A DNA stretch of 64,000 nt from Bugula neritina (lineage: Eukaryota; Animalia; Bryozoa). The position numbers and the translations under genes are program-made. Numbering within the stretch: position 1 is the first letter of the stretch; every line of letters starts with the position of its first letter. The notes beneath the pieces were generated by a model that was not told the origin of the DNA, did not search any database, and saw nothing but the letters and a program-made list of their open reading frames with translations. The stretch is from assembly GCA_964035545.1 (NCBI GenBank), contig OZ037772.1:1612001-1676000 (forward strand), written 5' to 3'. This document shows, piece by piece, positions 24,501 to 64,000 of this stretch.

Positions 24501-27500
24501 AAATCATTACCAGCAAGCTGCCATGGAGTAGCCATGCTGAGGCTACAGGAGTGCGTTAATGACTTGGTGACTGAGCATACTGAACAGGACAGTAGTTACC
24601 CTACTTACTTTGAGCTTTGAAAAGTTATGTTGTGTTATTGCTATGTTTTATTGTTGACTTTTTTATTTAGGCTATTGTTATATTTGTTTTGTTACATTGT
24701 TCGAATTGAAAAAATTGAATAACAAAAAATAACTAAAAAGACACAGTTATGTATGCTATTTTGTATCAATTCATCTGTAAGACATACACAAAGAAGAAAA
24801 CTTACAAACTTAACAGAAATAACCTAAAAATTCATTAAAATGGTAATAAACTAGAAAACTAGGAATATAAAATTGGATTTCTCACAACATAATCTTTGAA
24901 TCTATCACGTATTTTGATAGCTGTATTTGTACCACGGACTTGCGGCTCACTAAGCCTACCAAAACTTGTCTGCTCTAAGGAAATCTGTGGCTCTAATGCT
25001 GCTCCAGTTGGAGGCTGTCTGTTTTGTCTTATGATGTTGTGCAAAATACAACAGGCGAGAGTTAGCACTTTCACCTTGTGTGGTTCTAGATCTATAGGCC
25101 TGAAAAATATCCTCCAAGTATTTGCAAGAATTCCAAATGCATTTTCTATAAGCCTTCTTGCTCTAGAAAGTCTTGCATTATGTACCTGCAAATAAAAAAT
25201 AAAAAATAAGCAATATTTTTAAATGACAAAATATTAAAGATATTCTATGTTGATCACCTCTTCATCAGGAGGCAGCACCCTGGAGTGTGGTTTGGAGAAA
25301 GGCCTCATCAAAAATGGTCTCAGAGGAAATGCTTCATCGCCAACTATGACAAAGGGTAAGAGCTCTGTGCCTTGCTCTGGAACTTCTGGCAGTGGAAAAT
25401 AAATGGTTCCATTTTCAATGTGTTGCAATAGCTTTGAAGACCGAAAAACTCCCCCATCAGAATGGCGCCCTTCTGCTCCACATTCCACATATGTGAACCT
25501 GTAACAACAAGAAGTTTAAATTACATTCCCTCTTAAACTAGAGAAAAGCTATTAATATGTATTCAAGTGTACATACTTGTAGTTATGATCGCACATAGCA
25601 AGCAGGATAATTGACTCAAATCCTTTGTAATTGTGGTATTGAGATCCAGCGTGGTATGGCTTGTTCATAGTGATATTGTTATAATTTTCAGATTTAGGGT
25701 TGATATGCTATCCAGAGAGTCTATTTATCTAGTATAGAACTGCACCAGGCTAAGTCGAGTGAACGAGTATATTTTATTCACAACTATACATCATAAAAAC
25801 ACGATACATTATTTCTAACAAGTTACACATCTAATCTATTTCACACTCTAGCTTCGACTGACTTAGCAGCGGGAAACTACAATTGCTGCTAACTATCAAC
25901 TACGCTAATTGGCTATCCATTGTTCCGGGTCAATTACGCGACCCTACATGTTGTGCTGCTGGTAGTTCCACGAACCACCACACCGCCCCCACCAGCAGAA
26001 AGCCATCTTTCTGATATATATAAAAAAAACATTCAATAGTAATTGCATACATCAGTGGACAAAAATAATACATAATATACAGGAAGAGACATAATAATAA
26101 TAATCAGAGTCGTTATAACGATCCGTTGCATACAATTGGCCAGCTGTAGATAGACGAGGAATACTAGCTAGCTGTGGTATTAGACAAGGAATAACCTGTC
26201 TAGCAGTTAAGCATTTACACGAGTTTGGTTCTTCACCAAATGTGGAGTATTCTGGGTAGCATACTAGAGTCCTTGTTGGGCACGCCGGTGCTTGGCTTGG
26301 CATGTACGCAGTTTCCGTTTCATACGGCATACGGATCCCTTCAGCTGGAAGAGTCCTGTGGTAGTGTTGAGTAGATCTGGCGCCAGCTGGGTGAACTCTT
26401 CTTGTAATCGTAGGAGGCGTTCTTCTACTGTGGCTAGTCGTACTGGGTCTGGGGACGGTGTCCGTCTGCGGCGTAATGGTGGACTGGGGGATCTGGTCCG
26501 TCTCTTCGCCGGGGTAGGGGAGATCTCTCCTTCTTCTGGATATGTAGTTTCCTCGGGGGTGTAGGTAATTGGAGGGCGGTCAGACACCAACGGGGATTGT
26601 TGGCGGGCGTTGTCTAACACACTTTGGAACCCCGAGGATAGAACGGCTAGTAGCATGGCCTTCTTTACCAGAGGTCGTATATATGTGAGGAACTCCGGGT
26701 ACAGCTTAGCGTCGACCACATAGTTTTCTCCAGGGAAACAGCCCGCCGCTCTGTGTCTGGTGACGGGGTAGGGATACACATCATTGTACCCGCAGGGGCA
26801 GAAGGTCAGTAGGAGATGAGCATTGACGTGTAGTTTAAGGGAGCGGTGAGAGGCGCAATCTTCACCACAGATCTGGCATCTCGTCCGTCCTCTGGACCCC
26901 CAGGCTGTTTCTATTTCTTCTTCGGTTTGTGGAGACACCCACCGCCAACGGCGGCGTAGTGGCTCAGGCCGGTCACCACTAGCATAGTCCTCCGGATACG
27001 GAGCGGGAAGTGTTCTATCCCGTACCCTGGTTGTAGCGGGTCGAGTGTAATCTGAAAAAGTTTCAACAGTGTTAGCACATTACACTGCTGTGTTGTCAGC
27101 TTGAACAGCTTGGCAACTCCTAATTCAGTTACCTCGTAGAGATTAATGATAGTGAATAGTCAGATAGAACCGTATTGCAATGAGATTATAAAAATCTCTA
27201 AGTCAAACTAAGTTCTTACTACGGTATTTCACTAACCTATCTCCAGCTCGATTGACTCAGTGAGTCAGAGCTGAGCGATGCAATCTAGTTTCGTATTAAG
27301 ATATAGTTAACTCACCCCACGATCTGTTGTCGTAAGACATACTGAATATGTGAAATGGTTTGAACTACTGCTTAGAAACACGTCTACTCTTGACTGCATC
27401 AGCGTATGAAAAGATCGAGCAACGTGGTTGGGGTGCGTGATTAAGACTTTGTGCACCCGGCGGATGAATTTTGTTCCTACTTCCGCCGATACAAAAGTTG

Positions 27501-30500
27501 ATATTTCCGTGGTGTTGACAACTCCCACGTTTGCTCGATTCTTTTCTCGTACGGTTTTCCCCTAGACTTTCATGTGTGCCGCTTTTAACGCAGTCACATA
27601 CGAAGTCCTTCAAGTATGCGGGGGGTTGCCTCGTACGCTGTCCCCTTTCTAGGGGGGGTGACACGCTTGCCGGTTCGTTAGTAGGGGCCTCTAATGGCGT
27701 CTCTACTTCACCGTCAGCTGTCACCTCTTCTTGTTCTCCGGATGGAGCCCCTCCCTCCGTGGGGGTTTGCACTTCTGGAACCGGCTCGGTTTCTGGAAGT
27801 GATGGAATTAAACTTGGCGGTGGCGGACACGCTTCTGTTGCCAGAAGCTGCCGCTCCTCTCTCACCAAGTTTTCTTCCCGCGGTATGACCACTTCGTATT
27901 CAGGTCCATGCCGCCGTCGCCCGCGCGTTGTTGTCTGCCTCCTGGGCTCTAACAACGGGGGGGCTTCTCCCACTCCGCCGGGGCTAGCCCAATACGGTTT
28001 CAAGCGAGACTCATTCTGGATAGACACCTGTCCTGAGCGCTCAATCTTGTACGTATGATTGGGCATAGCCTCGACGACCACGTAGGGACCTACGAACTTA
28101 GGCTTCAGCTTATCAGCCTGTCCGCGGCGCCTACGGTAATTGACCATCCACACCTTATCTCCTCTTTGATAGAGGGGTGGTTCATCGGAATCTTCGTGCC
28201 GCACCTTCCACTGCTGTTGACGCAGTATCTCGTGTGCGGCCTTCATCCGTTCCACTAGTTCACTGGCATACTCGTGGACTGAGTTATCTTGCTCTGGAAC
28301 GTGATAGGTGAGATGGTCAGGGACACGAGTCTCTCTCCCGAGCATCAAGAGGTTTGGGGTCTCACCAGTACTGGTGTGTGTGGTGCTACGGTATGCACGC
28401 ATGACTTGCGGCAACACCGTATCCCATTCCTCTTGACCTCGTCCAAGGAGGAGACTCCGGAGCGCATCACCTAACATCCGGTTGTTGCGCTCCACCACCC
28501 CGTTACCTTGAGGGTGGTAGGGGGTGGTCCTGCTCTGATTTACTCCCCAGAGGTGGCAAAGGTCGCTCATCAGTTGAGACTGGAATTGAGCGCCTTGATC
28601 AGAGTGTATCTGTTCGGGAAGCCCAAAATAACAGAATACGTGTTGGTCTAGTGCCCTGGCCACTGTTGGGGCTGATGCATCTGGGATAGCCAGAGCATCC
28701 GCCCACCTAGTAAAGTGGTCGGTTAGTACTAGGATCCAATTATTGCCTCTGGGGGTCAGGGGCATGGGTCCGACCAGGTCTACAGCGACTACCTGCCAGG
28801 GCCTACCAGCATATAGCCTCCGCCGTCCTGCTTCACCAGGGGGGCGGCTATGCTTACTGGCCTGGCAGATCTCACACTGTTTGACTCTGAGCCGGACGTC
28901 ACGCTCCATCTGTGGCCAATACCACCGGAGTCGTAATTTGGATATCACTCGCTTGACCCCTGCGTGGGCCTGCTTGTGAGTATCCCAAATCAACTCACGG
29001 CGGATGGCTGTGGGGCAGACTACCCTCTTCCTTTCCGGGTGTCTGCCGCTGGCAGCTAGAGAGATGGTTAGCAACCCATCCTGCCCGATCCGCAGCGAGT
29101 CCCAACGCTGACAGTATAGCCGGAATTCGGCGCATCCCTGTCTTATGCGTTCCTCGCTGGGTCGTCGCCCTTCCCTTTTGGCCCGGTAGATGTCTGCCAC
29201 GACTCCAGACAGCTCTTCTTGGAGCTTCTTCAGCTCTCGAACATTACCGGCCAGTACAGGGTTGGCGCGGAGGTTTTGTATATCCTCCGGGGACTCATCA
29301 ACTCTTTGCCTGAGTTGACCTTGATCCCAGTCAAACGGTGCTCCGTGATGAGCCAGCGTCTCCAACTCGCATCGAGGGGGACCTCCATCCCTCCTCTCGA
29401 TGTTGAGACACTGTTTGCAACCTCCGTCAGGTCGGCGGCTCAACCCATCCGCATTGCTGTGTCTCTTGCCCGGTCGGTGTTCGATCCGGTACGAGAATTC
29501 AGCTAGGATTTCGAGCCACCGGGCGACCTGACTAGAGGGCTCTGCTCTCCTGCACAACCAGATCAGCGAGGCATGATCCGTACGCAGCCGGAACTTCCTG
29601 CCATATAGGTATGGTCTGAAGTGCTTCACTGACTTGATTACTGCCAGCAGCTCCTTGCGGGTAGTGCAGTAATTTCGTTCAGCGGGAGAGAGAGACTTGC
29701 TGTAGTAGGCTACTACTACTTCTCGGCCTTCCTGCACTTGTGACAGCACAGCGCCAACATTCTGGTCACTGGCGTCCGTGTCTAGGATGTACTCCAGAGT
29801 GGGGTCTGGGTAGGCCAAGATGGGCGCCGTTAGGAGGCAGCCCTTGAGGCGGTCGAACGCTTCTTGTTCGACTAGAGTCCACTGCCACGTCACTCCCTTT
29901 GCGGTAAGCCGGTTTAACGGCTTGGCTATGCCCGCAAAGTCTGGTATGTATTGCCTGTAATACCCTACCAGCCCCAAGAAAGCCCGGAGTCCGGTCAAGT
30001 CTTGAGGGGTGACCCAGTCTTCTACTGCCCGTACCTTTTCGGGATCCGTTGCCACGCCGTTTCGACCGACAACGTGCCCCAGGTACTTGACCTCCGGCTG
30101 CAACAGAGCGCACTTGGAAGGTTTGAGCTTAAGACCGGCACCTCGGAGTCTCTCGAAAACCTCCTGCAGACGACTGACATGTGTCTCGAAGTCTGGAGAG
30201 ATTACGATGACATCATCGAGGTAGACCAGCAGTGTCTTCCAATGGAGTCCGCTAAGGACTTGTTCCATCAGCCTCTGGAAGGTGGCTGGGGCGGAGGTTA
30301 ACCCGAAGGGCAGCACCTTCCACTTCCACAAACCGTCCCGTGTGATAAACGCCGCTTTCTCTTGGGCGTCGGGACTCAGAGGAACCTGCCAATAGCCGCT
30401 TAGCAAGTCTAACGTACTGAAGTACTTGCTGCCGGCTAGGGCGTCCAATGACTCGTCAATACGAGGTAGAGGGTAGGCGTCCTGTATGGTTACGCTATTG

Positions 30501-33500
30501 AGTTTGCGGTAGTCCACACAGAACCGCCAACTGCCGTCTTTCTTCCGGACCAGTACGACTGGCGAGCTCCACGCACTATGGGCGGGCTCTATCAGTCCCC
30601 GGTCCAGAAGATCCCGTACTTGTCGGCTAACCTCCTTCTCTTTCTCCGGCCCCAGCCTGCGTGTGGGCTGCCGGACAGGGACTGTCCCTGCAGTCAGCGG
30701 TATTTCGTGTCTGACAATTCCAGTCAGTCCCACGTCATGCTCTCCGCTGCTGAACACATCACCGTAGTCGCGTAGTAACTTGGCCATAGCTTGGCGCTCT
30801 CTGTTACTCGCGCAGCCACCACTGGCCGTCTCGTATAACTCCCGGAGATGTGTTGGGACTGCCCCTCGTCCCTGAATAGGGTGTCGAGGGGGGGCCTCTG
30901 TCGCATCACTCAGCGACGGGCCTACGTCTCCCTCTTGAACAGAGTGAAAACGGCCTAGCATCGACCCAGCCGGAAGCTTGATAGGCTCGGTAAAGGGGTT
31001 GACGCACTGCACTAAGATCTCCCCTTGCTCAGTCAGCTGATTCAGACTGCTGGCAAGTTGGATCTTTTCGTGCGCGCCTTCAACCACCCCGAGTCCAGAG
31101 ATCCGGCTACTATTCACCCTGCAGTGAATGGTAGCCCGGGAGCGGCCTGGTATGGTACGGTTGCGTACCACTTGCACACCTCCCACTAAAGGGCAGCCGA
31201 ACTTGTCGACGCAGGCGAGTTCCCGCCCGGACATCATCATTGCAGATCTGCTAAAATCTATGTGACATCCGTGCCGTTTAAGGAACGGCATCCCGAGGAT
31301 AGCATCCTCCTTGAGCTGACTGACGATGAACGTCTCTTGGATCGTTTGATCGCGGACTCGTCCCGTCAGCTCAATTATACCATAGAAGGGAAGGCACGAC
31401 CCGTCAGCTAGGGTGCCGTATTCCCCTTCGTATGCTTCCATCTCGCCCCTGACCCTAGCACTGAGGGTGTCGAAGAGTTGGCGGCTTAAGAGGTTCGTGG
31501 TACAGCCCGAATCAATGAGAAAAGTAACAGCTTTGCCTTCCAGTTTACCGGGCAAGAAATAGCTGTTCCCATGGGGCTGCACCTGAACTCTCCCTTCAGG
31601 CCTGACTCTCGCAGGGAGTACCTCCCTCGCTTTGGGTCGCGAAGGAGGTCTGTTGGGGCGGTGATAGGTAGGCCTCGGGGGTGCCGAGGCTGGTTTCTCA
31701 GCTACCTTTGTGTGCTCCCATCCAGATTCTTGGACTTGTAGCCCTGTGAATCTGTTGTGAAGGGGCATAGAAAAGGCAGCCGCGGGGCGAAGCCCCTTGC
31801 TGGTCCGTCGCGGCTGTTGCCACTGTTGGTTGCCAGTACGCGGTGCCCGTCTGGGTGACCTGCGTTTCTTCTTCCCTAGAGGTTTCGTCGACCCGCGGAA
31901 GGTGGGAACATCTGCGGGCCGCGGTAGTTTAACCCCTGATTTAGGAAGGGACAATATCGGCGGAAATGTCCTTGATTTCCGCACTCCCAGCAAAAACTGA
32001 CTGTTTCTCCCTGTGGCGGCGCCAATGGCCGCATGGGCTCAGGGGCGGTACTCACTGGGTTTTGTGGGGTCAGTGTTGCTATCAGCTTGGCTAGCATGTC
32101 CGTCAGTTGAGTGACTTTTGATGCCGTCGCCAACTGGGACACGGCAGCCGCGGCGGGGGTTTCCTCCCCTTGTCCCGCGGCCGTGTCTGCGCAGTCTATC
32201 TCCACTTGGCGGGAGCTTCCGCGACTTTTATGCATTTGGTTAGCTAGGAGGTAAGCTTCCCCCTCAGTCAGAGCATCTTCAACGGTGGTGACTCCCCTAG
32301 CTAGAAACTGGTGGTGGAGACCCAGATCGTCGACAGATGCTATGAAAGCGTCGAGGGTGTACCTCTCGCGGTTGACTGGGGGCAAGTCGCTGTATGCGAT
32401 CTGTGCCAGCTTCATGACCGCGGTGGCATGCTCCCGCAGCGGGGTGCGGGGATCACGCCGCAACCTCTGTAATCGGGCCCTGGCATCTGTAGTCGAGAGG
32501 CCAAAACGGGCCCGCAGAGAAGCAAAGATATTATCAATGTCTACGCCCAGCCCATAGGGCTTGGCTTTGTCCATCAATGCCATTCTAAGCTTCAGCAGCG
32601 CCACCCTAGGGGGCCACTGAGCGACGTCCATTACGTCGCTAAACTCTTGAATAAATTGTTCCACCTCCTCTTCACCCGTGAAGGTGGGCGCCTTTAACCT
32701 GTAGCGGTCTTCAGCTAGTTCTCGCGGAACCCTTCGCTCTTCTACTACATGGTTAACAGGCATTGTCTCTACAGCATTGTCTCTACGCTCACCTTCGATT
32801 GCCGGTGGTTGAGTTTCAGCATTTTCAGTCTCCATCTTGGATGCACTATCCCACTGCTGCCACCACTGTTATAATTTTCAGATTTAGGGTTGATATGCTA
32901 TCCAGAGAGTCTATTTATCTAGTATAGAACTGCACCAGGCTAAGTCGAGTGAACGAGTATATTTTATTCACAACTATACATCATAAAAACACGATACATT
33001 ATTTCTAACAAGTTACACATCTAATCTATTTCACACTCTAGCTTCGACTGACTTAGCAGCGGGAAACTACAATTGCTGCTAACTATCAACTACGCTAATT
33101 GGCTATCCATTGTTCCGGGTCAATTACGCGACCCTACATGTTGTGCTGCTGGTAGTTCCACGAACCACCACAATATGTTTGCCATCCAGTGCTCCTAATA
33201 ATAATAATAATACAAAAATGATTTAAATAAATGAGTTACTCAAATAAAATAATTTTTAAATTCAAAACTATTGAATATTGTTTTTACCTAAACAATTAGG
33301 GTAGTTCCATTTCTTGAAGCCTTCTGCCACTTCCTTCCATTCTGTTACCGTAGTTGGTGTTTTTAGCCATTGCCCTTGTAAGCTACTGATAATTGAAATG
33401 CACACGTCCATTACAATATTAGATATCGTTGCTAATCCAATATTCCATTCATAATGAAGAGACGTCATACTTTGACCGGTAGCTAAATATCTTATGGTAA

Positions 33501-52300: not shown

Positions 52301-53821
52301 TACATTCTCGCTTTTGGTGCTGGGCATTTGTAATAAATCCAGGTGCAAACATGATTTCCATGACAGCAAGCTATGTTGGGTGGTTTCCACAACTAGGAAT
52401 TTTAATGTAGTGTAACATCCTTGCTTGTTTAGTATCTGTATCCGTGTCCACCCTAGTGGTGCACACTTGCTCTGGTCATATAAAGTTAGTACAGTATCAG
52501 TCGGTGTAAGTTTCGGTTTACCTAGCTTGTCGTAGTCGATCGTATTCAAAGTATTGCATGATGCACCAGTGTCAAGTTGGAATTCAATGTCATAAATAGT
52601 ATCTGCTTGCTTAGCAGTGAGCATCGCTAATAATTTACGATCTCGTACAGTAGTGGAGATAGTACTTACATGTTGAGAGTCACTGTCTGAAGAGTAATTC
52701 CAGGTGACTTGATTGGCTGTTTCGGTTGAGTCGCGATAATGATGCATGCGTGACCTGCAGTATGTAGCAAAGTGGTTAAATTTCTTGCAATGATTGCACT
52801 GTTTCCCATATGCTGGGCATGCTCGAGGTGGGTGATTGCCTCCACAGTTTCCACACCTAGAAGCACCAACTGATTTTCTGACGTTGGGCTGAGAGTGAGT
52901 GTGTGAAAGTTGTCCTCTGTGTTTATCAGTGTTACGAGTGTCATTAGAGTGATATTGATGAGTCGGAGGTCTATGTTTTACCAAGTTCACTTGTTCGAGT
53001 CCATATGTGTTATCCTTAGTCATAGTCTTGTAGTCAATAGCCGATGCTTCTTCTCGTCTGCAGAGTTCAATTGCTTTGTCAAAGTCAGTCAAGTCAAACA
53101 GTTTCTTTCTAATCTTGTCACTTTCAATTCCCAGTATCAGTGCTTGTAGTATCAGTCGGTTGTACATGTCTTTTAAGTCACATAGTCCTGCAATGGTATG
53201 TAGTTCAGTCAAAAATTCGTCAATAGTTCTATTTCCTTGCTTACAAGTCAGTAGTGAGTGAGTCTTAGCCACTAAGTTTATTCTTGGTTTGCAGTAGTCA
53301 TCAAACTGCGTCACAACTTTGTCATAGTCAGTTTTGTCATTGTTGTCAGTCCAGTTGAAAGAGTCGTATATTTGGTTGCCTCGGCGACCGATAGTTCTAA
53401 GTAGGTATGCAGTTTTCACTTTGCCTTCGGCTGTATCTTTCGATGTGGCAGTTAAAAAAAGTTCGAAGTCACGTTTAAAAATCTTCCATTCCTCAGGTAA
53501 ATTCGGTCCATCTGCTAATGGTTTTGGCGCTAGTAATTGCTCCATGTTATTTCAGTGTAATATTAATAATAATTAGACTCGGGGCACCATGTTTTATGTT
53601 GATTTGTGATATTATTTCAGCTATCGTGAAAAGACAGAACGTGCTCGAGTTAGTTGATAAACGTAAGAGGCCGAAGCCGTGATTTATTACCACAATATAT
53701 ATATACGAAAATACTAAAACTATTACAATAAGTGATACAATTAATTATTAAGATTATGACAAAAAATAGTAAAATAATAAAATAACAAATTAGAAATAAA
53801 TGTTTACATGAACACCGAACA
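49321..53821 (-). mobile_element. Gypsy-C: full-length intact Ty3/Gypsy (Mag-like) LTR retrotransposon
   Basis: 232-bp LTRs 53590-53821 (5') and 49321-49552 (3'), apparently identical; 5-bp TSD CTGAT; PBS TGGTGCCCCG (elongator tRNA-Met-type). Confidence 0.97.
49595..53545 (-). CDS. Gypsy-C single gag-pol polyprotein (1316 aa)
   Basis: CGNCGGNH..C and CNHCKKFNH..C knuckles, LDTGAS, IRICIDP, IVADD, TDASN, HHCC, GIDLF/HTDNGPQF/KAESAVK; no disablements. Confidence 0.95.
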   Translation of the reverse strand: MEQLLAPKPLADGPNLPEEWKIFKRDFELFLTATSKDTAEGKVKTAYLLRTIGRRGNQIYDSFNWTDNNDKTDYDKVVTQFDDYCKPRINLVAKTHSLLTCKQGNRTIDEFLTELHTIAGLCDLKDMYNRLILQALILGIESDKIRKKLFDLTDFDKAIELCRREEASAIDYKTMTKDNTYGLEQVNLVKHRPPTHQYHSNDTRNTDKHRGQLSHTHSQPNVRKSVGASRCGNCGGNHPPRACPAYGKQCNHCKKFNHFATYCRSRMHHYRDSTETANQVTWNYSSDSDSQHVSTISTTVRDRKLLAMLTAKQADTIYDIEFQLDTGASCNTLNTIDYDKLGKPKLTPTDTVLTLYDQSKCAPLGWTRIQILNKQGCYTTLKFLVVETTQHSLLSWKSCLHLDLLQMPSTKSENVNFATTDPDLQTLLTNFDDIFTGLGKFEQEYRIELRPEAVPVQVRPRKVPLSMKSDLIKTILELEQRQIIAKVEAPTDWISHLQPVRKPNGKIRICIDPQNLNQAIKRNHAVMPTLEDVLPQLNGAKFFSLCDAKEGFYQIPLAEESTDLTTFWTPIGKYKYLRLPFGIASAPEEFQRRLTENLAGLDGITIVADDILIFGSTRKEHDRNLEALFKRARQTGLRLNKEKSRFLQDELPYIGHILTTNGLKPDPNKVKAILKMKPPSSPQGVKRFLGHITYMSKFISNLASESEPLRRLLTQDNAQDFHWTDDQMNAFNRLKTLLTDSETLQYFDCNKPVTIQTDASNAGVGATLMQGGKPVAYASRSLTKSEQNYVPLELECLAIVFGTERFDQYIFGHHAVTIQTDHKPLVSIFRKSIHKASRRLQAMLLHLQRYPNIKVTWQKGAEQITADLLSRDSYFDSPNYQQLPEHIFHIDSQNNDAPVCDDLIDNIRTATAQDNELMTLTNLIKHDWNIANCTTHDKYKHFQDELSIDNGIVYKGLRAIIPKTLQRKFLQLLHTGHNGINSTLRRARHTVFWLGITKDIKNNIANCRQCQLDAPRQQKETLLLHTVPQQPWTKVGIDLFEYNHTHYITIVDYTTDYLEYDRLDNQTAEAVINSIKRCFGRLGIPRQVHTDNGPQFTSHQFSTFSQSWNFTHTTSSPYHPQSNGKAESAVKIAKRILRRCEEPELALLEHLNTTKEGLTASPIQQLIGRPTRSVLPQVRPETENNQGWWEKQGRNEKLQQRCNDGARDLAVLKEGQPVLVRDWSQHRRKWQEAQINKQLSSRAYAIQLNNNLFRRNRRDIRPLVTEPASPETPKDPKQNASSTQVDTTESANHSDNLRRSTRERKPPSWMADYVPS

Positions 53822-54253
53822 CTGATACTCAATCTCATACTGAGTCTGATACTCGTAGTCATAGTGATAGTCTTTGCCAGATTATTGTTAGATAATTTAG
53901 GCTAGTACTAGTACTACTACTAGTAGTACTACTACTAGTACTAATAGTGTGGTGGCTCGTGGAGCTACCAGCAACACAATACGCAAGGTTGCGTATTGAC
54001 CCGGAACAATGTATTAGCCAATTAGCTAAGCTGTTTGATAAGTAATAGTAGCCGCTTCGCGCTACTAGCTCAGTTGAGGATAGTGCTGTAAATTAAATAG
54101 ACGTGCGTATCATTACTGTTGTACATTGGATTTTTATTATGTATTCTTGTATTAAATATAACGGTATCTACTCGACTTAACCGGTGAAGTTTCTCTAGTG
54201 TTAAATAGACTCTCTTGGTGGCACATCAACCCTAAATCTGAAAACTATAACAG

Positions 54254-54271
54254 TGGTGGCAGCGGTGGGAT
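54254..54271 (+). promoter_or_regulatory. Primer-binding site, tRNA-Leu-type
   Basis: TGGTGGCAGCGGTGGGAT, 18 nt complementary to the ..ATCCCACCGCTGCCACCA 3' end of metazoan tRNA-Leu(AAG). Confidence 0.85.
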
Positions 54272-54285
54272 AGTGTATATCAAAG

Positions 54286-55152
54286 ATGGAGACTGAAAAC
54301 GCTAGAATGCAACCACCCCCAGTAGAAGGTGAGCGTAGAAATGCTGTTAATCCTGTGAATCATGAAGGAGAAGAAGCTTATAGACATTGCTTGAAAGCTC
54401 CCACCTTTACTGGGTCGGAAGATGTCGAACAATTTATACAAGAATTTAGAGAGGTAATGGAAGTTGCTCAATGGCCGCATAGAGTGGCCCTCATTCAATT
54501 GCGGAGAGCGGTGACGGAACAAGCCAAGCCGTACGGAGTGGGAACGGACGTAGACGGCATACTGGCTGCGCTGCGGGCCCGTTTTGGCACCTCCGTCATA
54601 GACGCTAGGACCAAGCTGGAGAGATTGTGCCGCACCCCGCGGACCTCGCTGCAAGAACATGCCGCGACGGTGAAGAAGCTGGCGCAGATTGCATATAGCG
54701 ATCTGCCAGCACAACACCAAGAGCGTTACACCTATGACGCCTTTGTCCAGTCCCTAAACGACCTGGGCCTAGACCATCACCTACGAGCTAAAGGGATAAC
54801 CAGAATAGAGGATGCCCTGAAGGCTGGAGAAGCTTACCTGTTGGCTACCCAAATGCATCGAGCACAACGGAACCCACCAGTAGTTGGAGTCAGCGCTGCT
54901 CGGGCTACGACAGGCTCCGAAGCCCTCCCGCTGGAAGCCGAAGTGGACCGTATGGTAGAGATGTTGGGACAATTGGTAACCATTCTGGCCGGTGCTGGCC
55001 CCGGTCAGGCCTTGCGGATGCCCCCAACACCTGTGGGGCAAGGCTGGAGTAGCGCTGATCAGGACCAGGGACAGAAAGGACGACCCCAATACCAGGGGGC
55101 GTTAAACTGTCACGGCCCGCGGACACTCTCCCTCCCCGCGGGCCGCAACTAA
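54286..55152 (+). CDS. gag: Gypsy-D gag (no CCHC knuckle)
   Basis: Aligns with Gypsy-B gag (METENA..KAPTFTG..VEQFIQEF..VAQWP..LAQIAYSDLP..GEAYLLA). Confidence 0.92.
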   Translation: METENARMQPPPVEGERRNAVNPVNHEGEEAYRHCLKAPTFTGSEDVEQFIQEFREVMEVAQWPHRVALIQLRRAVTEQAKPYGVGTDVDGILAALRARFGTSVIDARTKLERLCRTPRTSLQEHAATVKKLAQIAYSDLPAQHQERYTYDAFVQSLNDLGLDHHLRAKGITRIEDALKAGEAYLLATQMHRAQRNPPVVGVSAARATTGSEALPLEAEVDRMVEMLGQLVTILAGAGPGQALRMPPTPVGQGWSSADQDQGQKGRPQYQGALNCHGPRTLSLPAGRN

Positions 55153-55158
55153 AGGAGT
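55101..55158 (+). promoter_or_regulatory. Predicted -1 ribosomal frameshift signal
   Basis: G_TTA_AAC, 5-nt spacer, perfect 10-bp stem CGGCCCGCGG/CCGCGGGCCG; equivalent in Gypsy-B at 31933-31871. Confidence 0.75.
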
Positions 55159-58100
55159 ATGGTGGAACACGCCGTCGTCTGTCCGTACGGACACGGCGGA
55201 ACATTCCACCCGAGTGGCAGGTACCACGCAGGACTAGTAGGCCCGCACAACGGCCCAGTACCTTCTCCCTGCCACTCGCTAACCGGTTTCACCGGTTACC
55301 TCGGGAAGAGGAGCCCGCCACTGAAATGGAGCCAGAAGGCCCAGTGGAGAGGCCCAAACCCCGCCGGCACCAACCTCGCCGCCGGAAGCCCCGTAAACCA
55401 CGGGTGAAACCCCCGCCGTCCTGTCAAACCAGGACAGCACATGCGGGGGGGGGTGAAAGTACAACCACATGGAGAGAGCTATTTCCTACCCGGAAAGGTG
55501 GCCGGCAACGCCGTCACTTTCCTGCTCGACTCCGGTTGTACTACCAACCTTCTCAGTCGTAGAGTCTTTGAGGCACTGCCCCGCCGGGACAGGGATAGAG
55601 TACGACCGTATACTGGAGAACATGGCACCCTGGCAGACGGGTCATGTATCCCCTTTTATGGTATTATCGAGCTCCCTGGGCGTGTCCGAGATCAGGCTGT
55701 ACAGGAGACCTTTATCATAGGTCAACTGGAAGAAGATGCTATCCTCGGAATGCCCTTCTTGAAGCAGCACCAGTGCCGAATAGATTTCAGTAAGTCGGTG
55801 GTGCTGATGGGCGGGCGAGAACTCGCCTGTGTGGATAAGTTTGGGCGTCCCCTGGTGGGCGGTGTTCAGGTAGTTCGAAACTGCACCGTACCCGGACGCT
55901 CCAGAGCTACTATCCACTGCCGAGTGAACAGCAACCGGATAGCCAGGCTCGGGGTCGTTGAAAGCGCGCACGAAAAGATCCAACTCGCCAGTAGTTTAAA
56001 CCGACTGACTGAGCGAGGGGAGGTCTTAGTGCAGTGCGTCAACCCCTTTACCGAGCCCATTGAGCTCCCAGCTGGGTCAATGCTGGGCCGGTTCCATTCC
56101 GTCCAGGAAGAGGACGTGGGCCCGTCGCTGGGTGACGCGACGGAGGCACCCCCTCGACACCCTATTCAGGGACGAGGGGCAGTCCCAACACATCTCCGGG
56201 AGTTATACGAAACAGCCAGTGGCGGCTGCGCGAGTAACAGAGAACGCCAAGCTATGGCCAAGTTACTACGCGACTACGGTGATGTGTTCAGCAGCGGAGA
56301 GCATGATGTGGGACTGACTGGAATTGTCAGACACGAAATACCGCTGACTGCAGGGACAGTCCCTGTCCGGCAGCCCACGCGCAGGCTGGGGCCGGAGAAA
56401 GAGAAGGAGGTTAGCCGACAAGTACGGGATCTTCTGGACCGGGGACTGATAGAGCCCGCCCATAGTGCGTGGAGCTCGCCAGTCGTACTGGTCCGGAAGA
56501 AAGACGGCAGTTGGCGGTTCTGTGTGGACTACCGCAAACTCAATAGCGTAACCATACAGGACGCCTACCCTCTACCTCGTATTGACGAGTCATTGGACGC
56601 CCTAGCCGGCAGCAAGTACTTCAGTACGTTAGACTTGCTAAGCGGCTATTGGCAGGTTCCTCTGAGTCCCGACGCCCAAGAGAAAGCGGCGTTTATCACA
56701 CGGGACGGTTTGTGGAAGTGGAAGGTGCTGCCCTTCGGGTTAACCTCCGCCCCAGCCACCTTCCAGAGGCTGATGGAACAAGTCCTTAGCGGACTCCATT
56801 GGAAGACACTGCTGGTCTACCTCGATGATGTCATCGTAATCTCTCCAGACTTCGAGACACATGTCAGTCGTCTGCAGGAGGTTTTCGAGAGACTCCGAGG
56901 TGCCGGTCTTAAGCTCAAACCTTCCAAGTGCGCTCTGTTGCAGCCGGAGGTCAAGTACCTGGGGCACGTTGTCGGTCGAAACGGCGTGGCAACGGATCCC
57001 GAAAAGGTACGGGCAGTAGAAGACTGGGTCACCCCCCAAGACTTGACCGGACTCCGGGCTTTCTTGGGGCTGGTAGGGTATTACAGGCAATACATACCAG
57101 ACTTTGCGGGCATAGCCCAGCCGTTAAACCGGCTTACCGCAAAGGGAGTGACGTGGCAGTGGACTCCAGTCGAACAAGAAGCGTTCGACCGCCTCAAGGG
57201 CTGCCTCCTAACGGCGCCCATCTTGGCCTACCCAGACCCCACTCTGGAGTACATCCTAGACACGGACGCCAGTGACCAGAATGTTGGCGCTGTGCTGTCA
57301 CAAGTGCAGGAAGGCCGAGAAGTAGTAGTAGCCTACTACAGCAAGTCTCTCTCTCCCGCTGAACGAAATTACTGCACTACCCGCAAGGAGCTGCTGGCAG
57401 TAATCAAGTCAGTGAAGCACTTCAGACCATACCTATATGGCAGGAAGTTCCGGCTGCGTACGGATCATGCCTCGCTGATCTGGTTGTGCAGGAGAGCAGA
57501 GCCCTCCAGTCAGGTCGCCCGGTGGCTCGAAATCCTAGCTGAATTCTCGTACCGGATCGAACACCGACCGGGCAAGAGACACAGCAATGCGGATGGGTTG
57601 AGTCGCCGACCTGACGGAGGTTGCAAACAGTGTCTCAACATCGAGAGGAGGGATGGAGGTCCCCCACGATGCGAGCTGGAGACGCTGGCTCATCACGGAG
57701 CACCGTTTGACTGGGATCAAGGTCAACTCAGGCAAAGAGTTGATGAGTCCCCGGAGGATGTACAAAACCTCCGCGCCAACCCTGTACTGGCCGGTAATGT
57801 TCGAGAGCTGAAGAAGCTCCAAGAGGAGCTGCCTGGAGTCGTGGCAGACATCTACCGGGCCAAAAGGGAAGGGCGACGACCCAGCGAGGAACGCATACGA
57901 CAGGGATGCGCCGAGTTCCGGCTATACTGTCAGCGTTGGGACTCGCTGCGGATCGGGCAGGTTGAGTTGCTAACCTTCTCTCTAGCTGCCAGCGGCAGAC
58001 ACCCGGAAAGGAAGAGGGTAGTCTGCCCCACAGCCATCCGCCGTGAGTTGATTTGGGATACTCACAAGCAGGCCCACGCAGGGGTCAAGCGAGTGATATC

Positions 58101-59727
58101 CAAATTACGACTCCGGTGGTATTGGCCGCAGATGAAGCGTGACGTCCGGCTCAGAGTCAAACAGTGTGAGATCTGCCAGGCCAGTAAGCATAGCCGCCCC
58201 CCTGGTGAAGCGGGACGGCGGAGGCTATATGCTGGTAGGCCCTGGCAAGTAGTCGCTGTAGACCTGGTCGGACCCATGCCCCTGACCCCCAGAGGCAATA
58301 ATTGGATCCTAGTACTAACCGACCACTTTACTAGGTGGGCGGATGCTCTGGCTATCCCAGATGCATCAGCCCCAACAGTGGCCAGGGCACTAGACCAACA
58401 TGTATTCTGTTATTTTGGGCTTCCCGAACAGATACACTCTGATCAAGGCGCTCAATTCCAGTCTCAACTGATGAGCGACCTTTGCCACCTCTGGGGAGTA
58501 AATCAGAGCAGGACCACCCCCTACCACCCTCAAGGTAACGGGGTGGTGGAGCGCAACAACCGGATGCTAGGTGATGCGCTCCGGAGTCTCCTCCTTGGAC
58601 GAGGTCAAGAGGAATGGGATACGGTGTTGCCGCAAGTCATGCGTGCATACCGTAGCACCCCACACACCAGTACTGGTGAGACCCCAAACCTCTTGATGCT
58701 CGGGAGAGAGACTCGTGTCCCTGACCATCTCACCTATCACGTTCCAGAGCAGGATAACTCAGTCCACGAGTATGCCAGTGAACTAGTGGAACGGATGAAG
58801 GCCGCACACGAGATACTGCGTCAACAGCAGTGGAAGGTGCGGCACGAAGATTCCGATGAACCACCCCTCTATCAAAGAGGAGATAAGGTGTGGATGGTCA
58901 ATTACCGTAGGCGCCGCGGACAGGCTGATAAGCTGAAGCCTAAGTTCGTAGGCCCCTACGTGGTCGTCGAGGCTATGCCCAATCATACGTACAAGATTGA
59001 GCGCTCAGGACAGGTGTCTATCCAGAATGAGTCTCGCTTGAAACCGCATTGGGCTAGCCCTGACGGAGTGGGAGAAGCCCCCCCGTTGTTAGAGCCCAGG
59101 AGGCAGACAACGATGCGCGGGCGACGGCGGCATGGACCTGAATACGAAGTGGTCATACCGCGGGAGGAAAACTTGGTGAGAGAGGAGCGGCAGCTTTTGT
59201 CAACAGAAGCGTGTCCGCCACCGCCAAGTCTAATTCCATCACTTCCAGAAACCGAGCCGGTTCCGGAAGTGCAAACCCCCACGGAGGGAGGGGCTCCATC
59301 CGGAGAACAAGAAGAGGTGACCACTAACGGTGAAGTAGAGACGCCATTTGAGGCCCCTACTAACGAACCGGCAAGCGTGTCACCCCCCCTAGAAAGGGGA
59401 CAGCGTACGAGGAAACCCCCACCGTATTTGAAAGACTTCATATGTGACTGCATTAGAAGCGGCGCATATGAAAGTCTAGGGGAAAAACGTACGATAAAAT
59501 GTTGGAGTTGTGAACCCCACGCAAATATCAACTTTTGCGAGGGCGGAATAGTGGGAGGAATTAATGCGCGTAAAGCAAATAGTTCCGACCTCGTGCCTCA
59601 GAAACGATGCTCAGCCTTTTCTTATGCTGACATCGCCAAAGGCAGACGTATCCCACAACCAGCTCCAACCTTACCAAGAACGTTGAGTATGGACATTAAT
59701 ACCGAGTTCCCAGGTAAGCCAGTATAA
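55101..59727 (+). CDS. pol: Gypsy-D pol (protease-RT-RNase H-integrase); 1-nt frame break at the G9 run 55445-55453
   Basis: The -1 frame from 55101 is homologous to the Gypsy-B pol N-terminus; the main ORF 55441..59727 carries all catalytic motifs. Confidence 0.92.
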
Positions 59728-59744
59728 GTCTTGTATTCCTATTC

Positions 59745-60818
59745 ATGGAAACGGGCTCGATGCCAGTAAATTCTGAACTAATTCAGCAGATTGAATCAGA
59801 ATTACTGGGAACCACGTTTCATGTGAATGACGATGAAGACACTGTAATGGCCGACGGTCTGTTAGACCTGGAGCTAGACACTGTTCTTGGTCAGTCCACA
59901 CATGATTCATCAGTTCCTCGAGTGCATTCCAAAAGCTGTGACTCTCAGGCTAGCAACGGTCGACAGTCACTAGAATTATGTTGTAAAGATCCACCGCGAT
60001 CTAACACTAATTCTACTTTTGTAGACACACTCGCACCCGTCTCTACGGACATGCCTTCTCTAGAGATGGCATGGGACCCAGAGCCGGCCCCAACGACTCC
60101 TACCACCAGGCAACTACCACCCCAGTTGGAAGCAACCTCCAACTGGATTACCCCTGCCACAGAGAGAGAAATCAGGACCCATCAAGGAGGTGAGAGTAAT
60201 CGTGAATGCAACCTCTGCCAGCAGCGATTCACAACCCACCGCAGACTAAAGGTGCACTTGCCGCAGCACTACATCACCACTTTCTGCCCTTGCGGAGAAT
60301 ATAGCTATAACCGTGATTACCTACTGCGGCACCAACGTACTATGCAGTGCTATCAAGGACATGTCTATGAAGTAGACGAATCATCATATCCTGCCTTTCT
60401 CAACGCCATCAAACCACTCATCACTGACTCAGCTCGGCTATCTCGCCTGGAGCAAGGCTTCCCTTCCCCGCGACCTATCATCTCTGGAGCCGCAGATAAA
60501 CCTACACAGTCTGCTAACTCTCCACCTCACAGTCCTATACGCATGCCGCATACCTTTCCTCGTGTCGTACTACAGAGAGTAGACACAAACGCGTATACAC
60601 TCCCTCCTCCTCTTCCATCCTCAGAGCGGAAACGACACAGGCAACCAACTTCCTCTCGCTCGTCCCCCTGGGCCCGTAACCTACGTGAGGTAGAAGCTAG
60701 GGCGCATGACTTGGAGCAAGAAGTGTACAGGCTGGCCCCACGAATACAGGCAGCCTCCAGTGAACTCAAATACTTACAGGAGTCGATTAAACGCATGAAG
60801 CGTGCGGCACGCAGCTAA
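59745..60818 (+). CDS. Gypsy-D ORF3: C2H2 + CxC-H-C zinc-finger/coiled-coil protein (predicted spliced exon starts at 60025)
   Basis: CNLC-QQRFTTHRRLKV-HLPQH, FCPC-x12-H-x5-C, ERKRHR, heptad C-terminus; homologous to Gypsy-B ORF3; lies between pol and the 3' LTR. Confidence 0.88.
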   Translation: METGSMPVNSELIQQIESELLGTTFHVNDDEDTVMADGLLDLELDTVLGQSTHDSSVPRVHSKSCDSQASNGRQSLELCCKDPPRSNTNSTFVDTLAPVSTDMPSLEMAWDPEPAPTTPTTRQLPPQLEATSNWITPATEREIRTHQGGESNRECNLCQQRFTTHRRLKVHLPQHYITTFCPCGEYSYNRDYLLRHQRTMQCYQGHVYEVDESSYPAFLNAIKPLITDSARLSRLEQGFPSPRPIISGAADKPTQSANSPPHSPIRMPHTFPRVVLQRVDTNAYTLPPPLPSSERKRHRQPTSSRSSPWARNLREVEARAHDLEQEVYRLAPRIQAASSELKYLQESIKRMKRAARS

Positions 60819-62189
60819 CTCGAGTCTACCTACCACTCCCTACTACTCATTCCCCTACCTCTCTGTGGCATTCCCTACCGTAATGGTGGCACGTACTCTA
60901 TATGTAGATAGGACCTTCTCTTGCTTATTACTTAGTGCACGATATATATACCTGTATATTTTTTACCAGTTGTTGTTTTTTATATACTTTTATGCTGTTC
61001 TCTTACCCCCCAACGAAGTTTACGTTTTTTTATGTGAATCTTATTTTATCAGAAAGTGGGCTTTCTGCTGGAGGGGGCAGTGTGGTGGCTCGTGGAGCTA
61101 CCAGCAACACAATACGCAAGGTTGCGTATTGACCCGGAACAATGTATTAGCCAATTAGCTAAGCTGTTTGATAAGTAATAGTAGCCGCTTCGCGCTACTA
61201 GCTCAGTTCAGGATAGTGCTGTAAATTAAATAGACGTGCGTATCATTACTGTTGTACATTGGATTTTTATTATGTATTCTTGTATTAAATATAACGGTAT
61301 CTACTCCACTTAACCGGTGAAGTTTCTCTAGTGTTAAATAGACTCTCTTGGTGGCACATCAACCCTAAATCTGAAAACTATAACAATAGTAATAATCACA
61401 GTACTAATAGTTATAGTATTAGTAATTAGAGTAATACTAATAGTAATACTACCACTAGTAGTAGCAGTAGTGCTAGTAGTAGTAGGCTACATGATGATGA
61501 TCATTATGATTATGATTATGAAGATGGTTATTACTATAACTATTACGGTATGAGTATAACTATAACTGTATTGGTATTTGATTTTATTTTGCATTGCTAA
61601 TTGAAGACCATGCGTTAAAATTAGCTGTTTCTCTCTTTTCTAAGTTACATTTCAAGTTGCACACTAATAGACATATATGCTTTCAATTTTTTTGGTCTAT
61701 CTTTAAGTTGTGAAACTTGACCAGTATGACTACGACTAACTGTAACTAGAATAAAATATTGGATGATAGAGAAGTTCCATACCGTTACACCTCCTTTGAC
61801 TTGTGCTACCGTCGGTAGTGCTAAAAGAGTGGAGCCAAAGAAAAGCATAATCACAGAATTCACAGCCTGCTGGTTTGAGATTTTTGTGGTCTAGAGATTG
61901 TACTGGGTTACAGAGATCTTTTTCCCCGTCTGTGAATTTTTGATCCCTGCGGTTGTTTCTGACTGTGGGTAGTTGGAGGTGTTGAGGGAGTGGGCTCACT
62001 GGGTAGGCTATATTATTGTAATCATATTAACCAACTTGACAGTTTACTAATTCATTGTCTAACTCTGTCTGTCTTTGTCTAGTAACACTATTTATTTATT
62101 TATTTACTTATTAATTTATTTATTTGACTAAATCTTGTCTGTCTTTGTCTAGTAACACTATTTATTTATTTACTTACTTATTAATTTAA

Positions 62190-64000
62190 TTAAATTACTA
62201 GTTTATATTACCAAGTTATATTACTAGTTTATGTTACCAAATTAAATTACTAGTTTATATTACCAAGTTATATTACCAAGTTGTATTACCAGTTTATGTT
62301 ACCAAGTTATATTACTAGTTAATGTTACCAAGTTAAATTGCTAGTTTATATTACCAAGTTATATTACCAAGTTGTATTACTAGTTTATATTACCGAATTA
62401 TATTACTAGTTAATGTTACCAAGTTATATTAACAGTTAATGTTACCAAGTTAAATTACTAGTTTATATTACCAAGTTATATTACCAGTTTATATTACCAA
62501 GTTATATTACCAGTTTATGTTACCAAGTTATCTTACTAGTTTATATTACCAAGTTATATTGTCAGTTTATATTACCAAGTTATCTTACTAGTTTATATTA
62601 CCAAGTTATATTACTAGTTTATATTACCAAGTTATATTACTAGTTAATGCTACCAAGTTGTATTACCAGTTTATGTTACCAAGTTATCTTACTAGTTTAT
62701 ATTACCAAGTTATATTACTAGTTTATGTTACCAAATTAAATTACTAGTTTATATTACCAAGTTATATTACCAAGTTGTATTACCAGTTTATGTTACCAAG
62801 TTATATTACTAGTTAATGTTACCAAGTTAAATTACTAGTTTATATTACCAACTTATATTACCAAGTTGTATTACTAGTTTATATTACCGAATTATATTAC
62901 TAGTTAATGTTACCAAGTTATATTACTAGTTAATGTTACCAAGTTATATTACCAGTTTATGTTACCAAGTTATATCACTAGTTTATGTTACCAAATTAAA
63001 TTACTAGTTTATATTACCAAGTTATATTACCAAGTTGTATTACCAGTTTATATTACCGAATTATATTACTAGTTAATGTTACCAAGTTATATTACTAGTT
63101 AATGTTACCAAGTTATATTACCAGTTTATGTTACCAAGTTATATCACTAGTTTATGTTACCAAATTAAATTACTAGTTTATATTACTAAGTTATATTACC
63201 AAGTTATATTACCAAGTTGTATTACCAGTTTATGTTACCAAGTTATATTACTAGTTAATGTTACCAAGTTAAATTACTAGTTTATATTACCAAGTTATAA
63301 TACCAGTTTATATTACCAAGTTATATTACCAGTTTATGTTACCAAGTTATATCACTAGTTTATGTTACCAAATTAAATTACTAGTTTATGTTACCAAGTT
63401 ATATTACTAGTTAATGTTACCAAGTTAAATTACTAGTTTATATTACCAAGTTATATTACCAGTTTATATTACCAAGTTATATTACCAGTTTATGTTACCA
63501 AGTTATCTTACTAGTTTATATTACCAAGTTGTATTACCAGTTTATGTTACCAAGTTATATTACTAGTTTATATTACCAAGTTATATTACCAGTTTATATT
63601 ACCAAGTTAAATTACTAGTTTATATTACCAAGTTATATTACCAAGTTATATTGCCAGTTTATATCACCAAGCTATATTACTAGCTTATGTTACCAAGTTA
63701 TATTAACAGTTAATGTTACCAAGTTAAATTACTAGTTTATATTACCAAGTTATATTACCAGTTTATATTACCAAGTTATATTACCAGTTTATGTTACCAA
63801 GTTATCTTACTAGTTTATATTACCAAGTTATATTGTCAGTTTATATTACCAAGTTATCTTACTAGTTTATATTACCAAGTTATATTACTAGTTTATATTA
63901 CCAAGTTATATTACTAGTTAATGCTACCAAGTTGTATTACCAGTTTATGTTACCAAGTTATCTTACTAGTTTATATTACCAAGTTATATTACTAGTTTAT
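62190..64000. repeat. Satellite of alternating 13-bp subunits (TTACCAAGTTATA / TTACYAGTTTATR; 26-bp unit) running off the window
   Basis: Direct periodicity. Confidence 0.95.

Follow-up and report, generated by a model that had tools for sequence, protein, structure and literature searches.

To our knowledge, extra genes are common in long terminal repeat (LTR) retrotransposons and almost never understood, the CERV gene of Cer1, a Ty3/Gypsy element of C. elegans, being the one well-studied animal case. The extra open reading frames (ORFs) of plant Ty3/Gypsy elements of the Ogre/Tat type are fixed, lineage-specific genes whose function is mostly obscure. Complex retroviruses encode regulators (Tax/Rex, Tat/Rev, Tas, Rem) in small extra 3' genes; these are nuclear proteins that oligomerise, control transcription or RNA export and carry arginine-rich and leucine-rich motifs, those of the Rev/Rex type acting in the export of unspliced RNA. 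CERV is a spliced gene that occupies the slot of the envelope gene (env) without being one, and its nuclear product is required for export of the unspliced genomic RNA (PMC10309623). The 517-residue protein is encoded by five exons, shares its start with gag, has a leucine-zipper-like helix, a candidate nuclear localisation signal and a Cys-rich putative zinc finger of C4 type, and reportedly lacks homologues beyond nematodes (PMC10309623). Orchid Ty3/Gypsy elements with a demethylase domain are a further instance of lineage-specific extra genes (PMC9289625). Here we describe ORF3, the third gene of two Ty3/Gypsy elements, Gypsy-D and Gypsy-B, that lie in 64,000 nucleotides of the bryozoan Bugula neritina (assembly GCA_964035545.1, contig OZ037772.1, positions 1,612,001 to 1,676,000 of the forward strand). 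This whole stretch is referred to below as the window, and coordinates without an accession or locus name are positions within it. ORF3 is a functional, non-envelope gene of a bryozoan Ty3/Gypsy lineage.

ORF3, a gene under purifying selection

In both elements ORF3 sits between pol and the polypurine tract (PPT). The Gypsy-D copy (ORF3-D; 59745-60818, + strand) is an uninterrupted, ATG-initiated frame of 357 codons that begins 17 nt past the pol stop and terminates about 260 nt short of the 3' LTR, which bears out an earlier note, made from the DNA letters alone, that an intact third ORF lies here. The same note described the Gypsy-B copy (ORF3-B) as intact, and this stands in part. A frame of 261 codons is indeed open (27049-26264, - strand), but it has no ATG ahead of its conserved part, so ORF3-B is intact only with a non-ATG or a spliced start. 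One in-frame stop bounds the frame upstream, and the longest conventional ORF within it (GTG start, 224 amino acids (aa)) would begin inside the first conserved motif. Relatives of the B type, of about 245 aa, have an ATG start shortly ahead of the conserved part.

The two proteins are a very divergent homologous pair, as the note had it, with 31% identity over 249 residues (BLASTP, E 1e-30), and every motif listed there is present in both. These are W-[IV]-[TS]-P-x-T-E-x-E-I, C-x2-C-x12-H-x3-H, C-P-C-x12-H-x4/5-C and Y-x-V-D-x3-Y-P-x-F-L-x2-I-[KR]-P-L, followed by a basic patch in a Pro/Ser-rich linker and a C-terminal heptad helix ending RMKR. The third ORF had been judged not to be a membrane env, and this too holds: two zinc fingers and a coiled-coil helix are present, and Kyte-Doolittle hydropathy of 11 members (ORF3-D, ORF3-B and nine relatives) revealed neither a signal peptide nor a membrane segment. 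The maximum 19-residue mean is 0.56 in ORF3-D, 1.36 in ORF3-B and at most 1.25 in the nine relatives.

Selection was assessed by the Nei-Gojobori method, as the ratio of nonsynonymous to synonymous substitution rates (dN/dS), in codon-aligned ORF3 copies that occur naturally and are uninterrupted. Besides Gypsy-D, the copies come from bryozoan genomic or metagenomic contigs, loci L001 to L014, which were reached through intact proteins matched by the ORF3 searches described below. The pairs gave the following values.

Gypsy-D and L001: dN/dS 0.154 (95% bootstrap interval 0.11-0.20)
L010 and L011: dN/dS 0.094-0.099
L012 and L013: dN/dS 0.17
L010 and L012: dN/dS 0.153-0.155
L010 and L013: dN/dS 0.162-0.165

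All bootstrap upper bounds are at or below 0.25. Between Gypsy-B and Gypsy-D, dN/dS is 0.20 for pol and 0.18 for gag. ORF3 is under purifying selection, and this is as strong as on gag and pol. The earlier description of ORF3 as a selected gene is upheld, with ratios of 0.09-0.17 between copies rather than near 1. Within ORF3 the ratio varies by region, from 0.05-0.08 in the core through 0.08-0.26 in the linker and helix to 0.19-0.63 in the acidic N-terminus.

The zinc-finger core and the ORF3 family

The ORF3-D protein was modelled at full length with AlphaFold2 (AF2) from a 50-sequence alignment, and its core was modelled alone with 72 diverse sequences. Four regions can be distinguished, all on the + strand.

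59745..60104: acidic N-terminal region, aa 1-120, with 21 D/E against 5 K/R; disordered in the AF2 model
60105..60464: core domain, aa 121-240, delimited by AF2, ligand conservation and profile matches
60465..60659: aa 241-305, a basic linker in which Pro, Ser and Thr abound; it contains SP dipeptides and a K/R cluster and is disordered in the AF2 model
60660..60815: C-terminal long helix, aa 306-357, from AF2 and a continuous heptad register

Modelled alone, the core has a mean predicted local distance difference test score (pLDDT) of 95.1 and a predicted template modelling score (pTM) of 0.86. In the model, a pair of short helices leads into two successive beta-beta-alpha fingers, after which come a strand and two further helices. 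Finger 1 is of the C2H2 type, with ligands C155, C158, H171 and H175, and finger 2 of the C2HC type, with ligands C181, C183, H196 and C202. Across the 72 members these eight positions, taken from C155 to C202, are conserved at 99, 100, 97, 97, 100, 99, 94 and 82%, and W134, V210 and P224 at 93% each. By its sequence, finger 1 is a textbook classical C2H2 finger: it has the full C-x2-C-x3-F-x5-L-x2-H-x3-H signature and is strand-strand-helix in the AF2 model. The core profile matches solved C2H2 fingers, those of HIC2 (E 2e-8) and also of Aart, SALL3, SALL4 and ZBTB17, while the Pfam zf-C2H2 model scores 15.6 bits, under its cut-off of 25.2.

Taken as a whole, the core is modelled as something else. 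The spacer between the fingers is 5 residues long against the canonical 7, and finger 2 opens with C-x-C; the fingers are therefore expected to pack as one globule and not as a flexible array. The two-finger part overlays the fingers of ZNF217 and BCL11A at about 2.9 Å over 50-52 columns. The best neighbours of the whole core in the PDB are DNA-bound tandem fingers, at non-significant values (E>=0.2, TM<=0.4), and Foldseek searches with the full-length model against the PDB and BFVD, and with the core model against the PDB, gave nothing at E<=0.001. We considered a tandem C2H2 array that reads DNA, and rejected it on the short spacer, the C-x-C opening of finger 2, the compact globule and the lack of a significant match to the whole domain. 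On the model, the core is a double zinc-finger domain of a new kind with predicted zinc sites.

Outside the core, the AF2 model of ORF3-D is disordered at the N-terminus save for a short helix at aa 10-20. This acidic region is conserved among D-type relatives and absent from ORF3-B. The C-terminal helix (aa 308-356) is modelled at pLDDT 88-97, and L, I, V or M occupy 10 of its 15 a/d positions in the heptad register against at most five in any other register. A K/R cluster is found in the tails of 12 of 14 D-type, 16 of 17 B-type and 12 of 23 distant family members. Weak matches to the basic leucine zipper (bZIP) protein C/EBP beta (E ~0.05) arise from the heptad helix and give no evidence of bZIP membership; that assignment was rejected, the basic patch lying in the disordered linker, apart from the helix.

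A search with the ORF3-D protein returned 48 proteins at 44-73% identity and one at 34%, and a search with ORF3-B returned 72 matches; the JGI protein P0211 is essentially identical to ORF3-B. A profile search with no length limits reached 371 clusters (at 50% identity) at E<=0.001, of which 170 were at E<=1e-10, and the part common to the 371 is the core domain. Among 30 diverse members looked up, the only organism names were Bugula neritina and Watersipora subatra. When metagenome contigs were scanned with a 13-sequence alignment, none of 125 pattern matches was confirmed. Two architectures coexist in one host: the D type, of about 360 aa with an acidic N-terminus, and the B type, shorter at about 245-270 aa, from which that region is missing. 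Members further removed in sequence (300-550 aa) retain the core, in many cases together with a helical region at the C-terminus. Two cores occur in one protein in P0050 (XP_067940964.1) and P0194 (XP_067940963.1), both from Watersipora subatra, and in P0079.

ORF3 lies after pol in seven of the related loci (L001, L002, L009, L010, L012, L013 and L014). In L009, from a separate JGI sample, it follows an intact pol of 1087 aa and shares only about 35% core identity with ORF3-D. The element in L002 (4185-11454) is older, its LTRs having diverged to about 85-89% identity and its pol being much fragmented; its open ORF3 of 330 aa is placed between the fragmented pol and the 3' LTR, which matches the 5' LTR at about 87%. 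A tandem duplication of ORF3 in this locus was considered and discarded, as the neighbouring second gene of 330 aa is unrelated and lies outside the element. An open ORF3 beside a fragmented pol is likewise seen in L001, L012 and L013. Because the loci were found through intact proteins, the intactness of ORF3 in them is a biased measure. Downstream of ORF3 in L011 lies the gag-pol of a neighbouring element. A different arrangement is found in L008 (2132-6564 of ENA ERZ650156), in which a gag-like gene precedes a single ORF of 1208 aa; this ORF opens with a protease, carries the ORF3 core close to its end and shows no similarity to reverse transcriptase (RT), RNase H or integrase. By its gene content L008 may be a non-autonomous derivative.

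The core also exists in a gene-like setting. On Bugula neritina scaffold VXIV02000093.1 (L006) it is encoded by two adjoining gene models with several exons each, KAF6040922.1 and KAF6040923.1, and neither gag nor pol nor an LTR occurs within 26 kb.

2362-4972 and 10001-16169 of VXIV02000093.1: the two core-carrying gene models of L006

These two proteins share an N-terminal motif with Watersipora XP_067944745.1 (L007, OY755165.1). The latter is an isoform from a 52-kb gene that otherwise encodes ordinary C2H2 proteins. The earlier note had allowed for the case that ORF3 is a recently captured host gene. Gene-like relatives do exist in Bugula and Watersipora; their cores, however, are at most 42% identical to that of any other member, and recent capture is therefore excluded. 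Since the gene-like paralogs stand without gag, pol or LTR, the gene may have been captured long ago or domesticated by the host.

The note had also recognised no described family with this gene. Pfam searches of the two ORF3 proteins and 13 relatives gave no family, just zf-C2H2 and coiled-coil noise below threshold, and no description of the ORF3 gene turned up in searches of the literature on Gypsy elements with extra-ORF zinc fingers and on bryozoan retrotransposons. Novelty thus holds for the protein and not for the concept, which has a precedent in the env-slot regulator CERV of Cer1 (PMC10309623). Extra ORFs in LTR retrotransposons, and a regulator in place of env, are already known. 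What is new is a protein family without a Pfam model or a solved or predicted viral structural relative, together with its size, its two architectures and its gene-like paralogs.

The host elements and their splice-like signals

The window is AT-rich (about 35% GC) with many short-period satellites, and the inserted LTR elements stand out at 50-58% GC. LTR pairs were located by comparing the window with itself and then trimmed to TG..CA ends. The parts of the two elements are as follows.

53948..61385, + strand: Gypsy-D, whole element from LTR to LTR; target-site duplication (TSD) ATAG (4 bp), primer-binding site (PBS) and PPT read
53948..54252, + strand: Gypsy-D 5' LTR, from self-comparison with ends read
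54286..59727, + strand: Gypsy-D gag-pol, given as one part, from Pfam and counts of stops and knuckles
59745..60818, + strand: Gypsy-D ORF3, 357 aa with ATG start, from the ORF list, homology and AF2
61081..61385, + strand: Gypsy-D 3' LTR, with a purine-rich tract ahead of it, from self-comparison with ends read
25677..33172, - strand: Gypsy-B, whole element; TSD ATAT (4 bp), LTR pair, ends read
32867..33172, - strand: Gypsy-B 5' LTR, from self-comparison with ends read
31876..32835, - strand: Gypsy-B gag, 319 aa with one CCHC knuckle, from the ORF list and knuckle count
27365..31993, - strand: Gypsy-B pol open frame, with protease, RT, RNase H and integrase, from the ORF list and Pfam
27316..27340, - strand: candidate first exon of ORF3-B, 25 nt with ATG start, 24 nt past the pol stop and followed by GTGAGT
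27052..27315, - strand: candidate intron of ORF3-B, 264 nt, GT..CTAAC..Y-tract..CAG, phase-compatible with the downstream frame
26264..27051, - strand: ORF3-B conserved frame, about 262 codons, comprising a short leader, core, linker, heptad helix and basic tail
25677..25982, - strand: Gypsy-B 3' LTR, from self-comparison with ends read

The candidate intron of ORF3-B was read from sequence signals and not taken from a prediction tool. Its acceptor-like CAG immediately precedes base 27051, at which the earlier note had begun the gene. In the relative L014, whose protein is 76% identical, the candidate exon 1 is matched base for base except for two substitutions, and this relative also retains the ATG and the donor, branch and acceptor motifs; between these splice-like signals, Gypsy-B and L014 differ by several indels whose lengths are not multiples of three. 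Because the signals are shared in this way, ORF3-B may start in a small upstream exon, with the candidate intron common to L014. A further donor-like site, an identical AAG/GTGAGC (the slash marking the putative splice point), stands at gag codon 14/15 of both elements, at 54327-54334 (+ strand) and 32787-32794 (- strand). Its phase is that of the acceptor-like site before the conserved frame of ORF3-B. Such donor-like patterns occur nine times in the window against 3.9 expected. The gag site may supply a donor for a subgenomic mRNA.

The LTRs of Gypsy-D are 305 bp long with a pair identity of 99.35%, and those of Gypsy-B 306 bp with a pair identity of 100%. In both elements TGGTGGCAGC opens the PBS one base past the 5' LTR, and a purine tract precedes the 3' LTR. 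Pfam matches in both pol genes follow the order protease, RVT_1, RT_RNaseH, Integrase_H2C2, rve and SH3_Tf2-1, and a chromodomain was matched in neither. Gypsy-D and Gypsy-B are young, genuine Ty3/Gypsy insertions of an ordinary element class. In Gypsy-B, gag and pol overlap in different frames with no internal stop in either, an arrangement that, from its sequence, resembles a programmed frameshift. In Gypsy-D, gag to pol is one reading frame broken by two in-frame stops, and no CCHC knuckle was found in any frame of this region, against one in the gag of Gypsy-B. Gypsy-D may be gag-defective despite its near-identical LTRs.

The two elements differ in degree of divergence from part to part. 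Their pol genes are 93.7% identical in nucleotides over 4.1 kb (27481-31582 and 55459-59548), with a synonymous divergence (dS) of 0.21, while the LTRs are about 75% identical, the gag proteins 48% identical with dS of about 2, and the ORF3 proteins 31% identical. At synonymous sites, gag and the 3' part of ORF3 have reached saturation, in contrast to the low divergence of pol. Because pol is near-identical while LTRs, gag and ORF3 are far diverged, these patterns suggest that Gypsy-B and Gypsy-D are mosaics, a pol segment having been shifted between diverged elements by recombination. Low synonymous divergence extends into ORF3 of the D type. In every pair compared (from Gypsy-D, L001, L010, L012 and L013), the proportion of synonymous differences (pS) is 0.14-0.30 in the first 120 codons against 0.45-0.77 downstream, a two- to four-fold reduction, and these codons contain blocks of invariant nucleotides. 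A conserved RNA structure in this 5' third was considered and dropped, as the RNAalifold covariation term (+1.32) is unsupportive. The low divergence here reflects either a recombination tract linked to pol or a cis-acting element.

Two further LTR elements lie in the window, at 49321-53821 (- strand; LTRs of 232 bp, 100% identical) and at 10778-15550 (+ strand; LTRs of 189 bp, 98.4% identical). Their pol proteins are only 25-33% identical to those of Gypsy-B and Gypsy-D, and neither carries a relative of ORF3, which the window encodes in Gypsy-D and Gypsy-B only. Gypsy-D is inserted about 125 bp from the former. Rfam and transfer RNA scans of the whole window gave no matches. Tandem satellites occupy 33738-34118, 37821-38365, 40801-43520, 44956-45950 and 62055-64000, with periods of about 12, 35, 21, 30 and 13 bp. 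Some are strongly strand-skewed, the GC skew being -0.41 in the 42-44 kb interval and +0.35 in the 44-46 kb interval.

Proposed function and comparison with known systems

The ORF3 protein is predicted to be soluble, with a zinc-finger core, a disordered basic linker and an amphipathic heptad helix of 50 residues. From this architecture we tentatively propose that it regulates the expression of its own element, which we hold to be a serious possibility rather than a likelihood; that it is a nuclear regulator is, on the same grounds, plausible. The C-terminal helix would form a dimer or higher oligomer, the basic patch or K/R cluster would direct nuclear import and the finger domain would bind nucleic acid. 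The protein, probably expressed from a spliced subgenomic mRNA, would then act on the DNA or RNA of its own element and raise its expression. It could do so by activating the LTR, in which case the acidic region would be an activation domain, or by stabilising and exporting the unspliced genomic RNA. In support of a regulator, the order of pol then ORF3 recurs in independent loci, the gene is under purifying selection, the zinc ligands are conserved, the core and the long helix are confidently modelled, and the heptad register is clean. The likeness of finger 1 to solved DNA-binding fingers, the K/R cluster in most D-type and B-type tails, the splice-like signals and the precedent of CERV speak for it as well.

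Several observations weigh against it, at least in its DNA-reading form. The base-contacting residues of the finger 1 helix are nearly constant across the family and the LTRs of Gypsy-B and Gypsy-D differ by 25%, and LTR-specific DNA recognition is therefore disfavoured. An activation domain cannot be a function common to the family, as the acidic N-terminus is missing from the B type. The 5-residue spacer and the fingers packed as one globule are unlike DNA readers of the beads-on-a-string kind, and binding of RNA or protein is equally compatible with them. Finally, the K/R cluster is present in just 12 of the 23 distant members. The first two of these observations favour a role at the RNA level, or one independent of sequence, over LTR-specific DNA recognition. 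A linker rich in Arg and Ser-Pro and the splice-like signals would fit a factor that handles intron-containing element RNA. A fuller version of this proposal is a good deal more doubtful: that a widespread bryozoan lineage is a true 'complex' retrotransposon with a spliced trans-regulator of its own RNA or LTR, built on a two-zinc domain not seen before, and that the tandem paralogs of Bugula and the Watersipora paralog are host-domesticated and serve as cellular regulators or as repressors of the element.

Other roles can be derived from the same architecture. ORF3 might be a particle-associated nucleic-acid chaperone or packaging protein, a coiled-coil oligomer that coats or anneals element RNA in the cytoplasm and is carried in the virus-like particle, in the manner of the ORF1 proteins of long interspersed nuclear elements (LINEs) or of a second nucleocapsid. 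A coiled coil combined with a nucleic-acid-binding module and basic disordered segments is what such a protein would have, its family-constant finger residues would suit sequence-independent binding, and Gypsy-D keeps ORF3 though its gag region has no CCHC knuckle. Gypsy-B, however, carries ORF3 alongside a normal CCHC gag, the gag of Gypsy-D may merely be defective, and Pfam and Foldseek (PDB and BFVD) found no similarity to the RNA-recognition motif (RRM) and C-terminal domain (CTD) modules of LINE ORF1 or to any nucleocapsid; we regard this role as unlikely, if credible. In other Ty3/Gypsy and Ty elements, chromodomains or contacts with host factors guide integration. An integration-site tether, in which the finger domain would bind chromosomal DNA or chromatin and the coiled coil or linker would bring the integrase complex to safe sites, would suit a pol without a chromodomain match, a finger that resembles DNA-binding C2H2 fingers and two insertions in AT-rich, satellite-rich DNA with AT-rich target duplications. 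Just two insertion sites were seen, though, and a separate ORF in place of an integrase fusion would be unusual, which leaves the tether improbable.

Where the two ORF3 types are 31% identical and pol is 94% identical in nucleotides, an arms race also comes to mind, in which ORF3 would neutralise host silencing by small RNAs or chromatin and its divergent types would mark the conflict. Short motifs conserved within disordered regions agree with such a counter-defence factor, as do the host-gene-like paralogs, which might serve as decoys or repressors. Against this, dN/dS is low wherever it was measured, with no sign of positive selection, and recombination explains the contrast between pol and ORF3 better; we consider counter-defence decidedly improbable. 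The same paralogs, tandem genes in Bugula neritina and one gene model in Watersipora that stand apart from any gag, pol or LTR, could instead be taken to mean that ORF3 is a passenger of no use to the element, either a zinc-finger gene captured from the host or an ORF that arose by chance. Purifying selection between copies that equals that on gag and pol, a position kept in element lineages whose cores share only about 30-35% identity, and the distance of the gene-like relatives (at most 42% identity to anything else), which speaks against recent capture, make this very improbable indeed. A degenerate or unconventional envelope or fusion protein has its position in the element in its favour and nothing further. 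None of the 11 members checked has a signal peptide or membrane segment, no glycoprotein family or fold was matched in Pfam, PDB or BFVD, and the env-carrying Gypsy elements described from bryozoans have an env of gB type in the order gag-env-pol (PMC13524379). Composition and the structure model effectively refute this last idea, to which we give practically no credence.

ORF3 represents a second family, independent of CERV and much larger (371 clusters at 50% identity), and it comes from bryozoans, a phylum of animals with mobile elements that have scarcely been described. Two sharply different types of ORF3 on near-identical pol backbones, together with apparent cellular paralogs, bear on how retrotransposons gain regulators and swap modules, and on whether hosts domesticate such genes. 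The predicted zinc-binding core, uncharacterised and confidently modelled in a fold without a solved relative, merits definition as a family.

Of the systems described, CERV appears to be the best analogue for the mode of action of ORF3. Set beside CERV by description, ORF3 likewise fills the env slot of a Ty3/Gypsy element with a gene that is not env, and it too has a zipper-like helix, a basic patch and a finger. The two differ in that the fingers of ORF3 are C2H2 and C2HC, against the putative C4 finger of CERV, and that ORF3-D has 357 aa against 517. Neither a nematode protein nor one named CERV was among the named search matches, no direct comparison with CERV having been made. The likeness to the regulators of complex retroviruses is one of architecture only, and neither the sequence profile nor Foldseek matched one of them at E<=0.001 in the PDB or the viral structure library. 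LINE ORF1 proteins also pair a coiled-coil helix with a nucleic-acid-binding module, which in ORF3 is predicted; their coiled coil precedes the RRM and CTD, however, whereas in ORF3 the domain order is reversed, no RRM or CTD is matched and the element is of another class. Unlike env of the errantivirus type, whether F-type or herpesvirus gB-type, ORF3 has no signal peptide, membrane anchor or glycoprotein fold. The extra ORFs of plant elements encode unrelated proteins in another host kingdom, often at a different position or in a different orientation. Among cellular proteins, finger 1 is a classical C2H2 finger like those of HIC2, SALL3/4, ZBTB7A and ZNF217; unlike in the classical C2H2 proteins, the fingers of ORF3 are predicted to be embedded in extra helices and strands and to form one globule with them.

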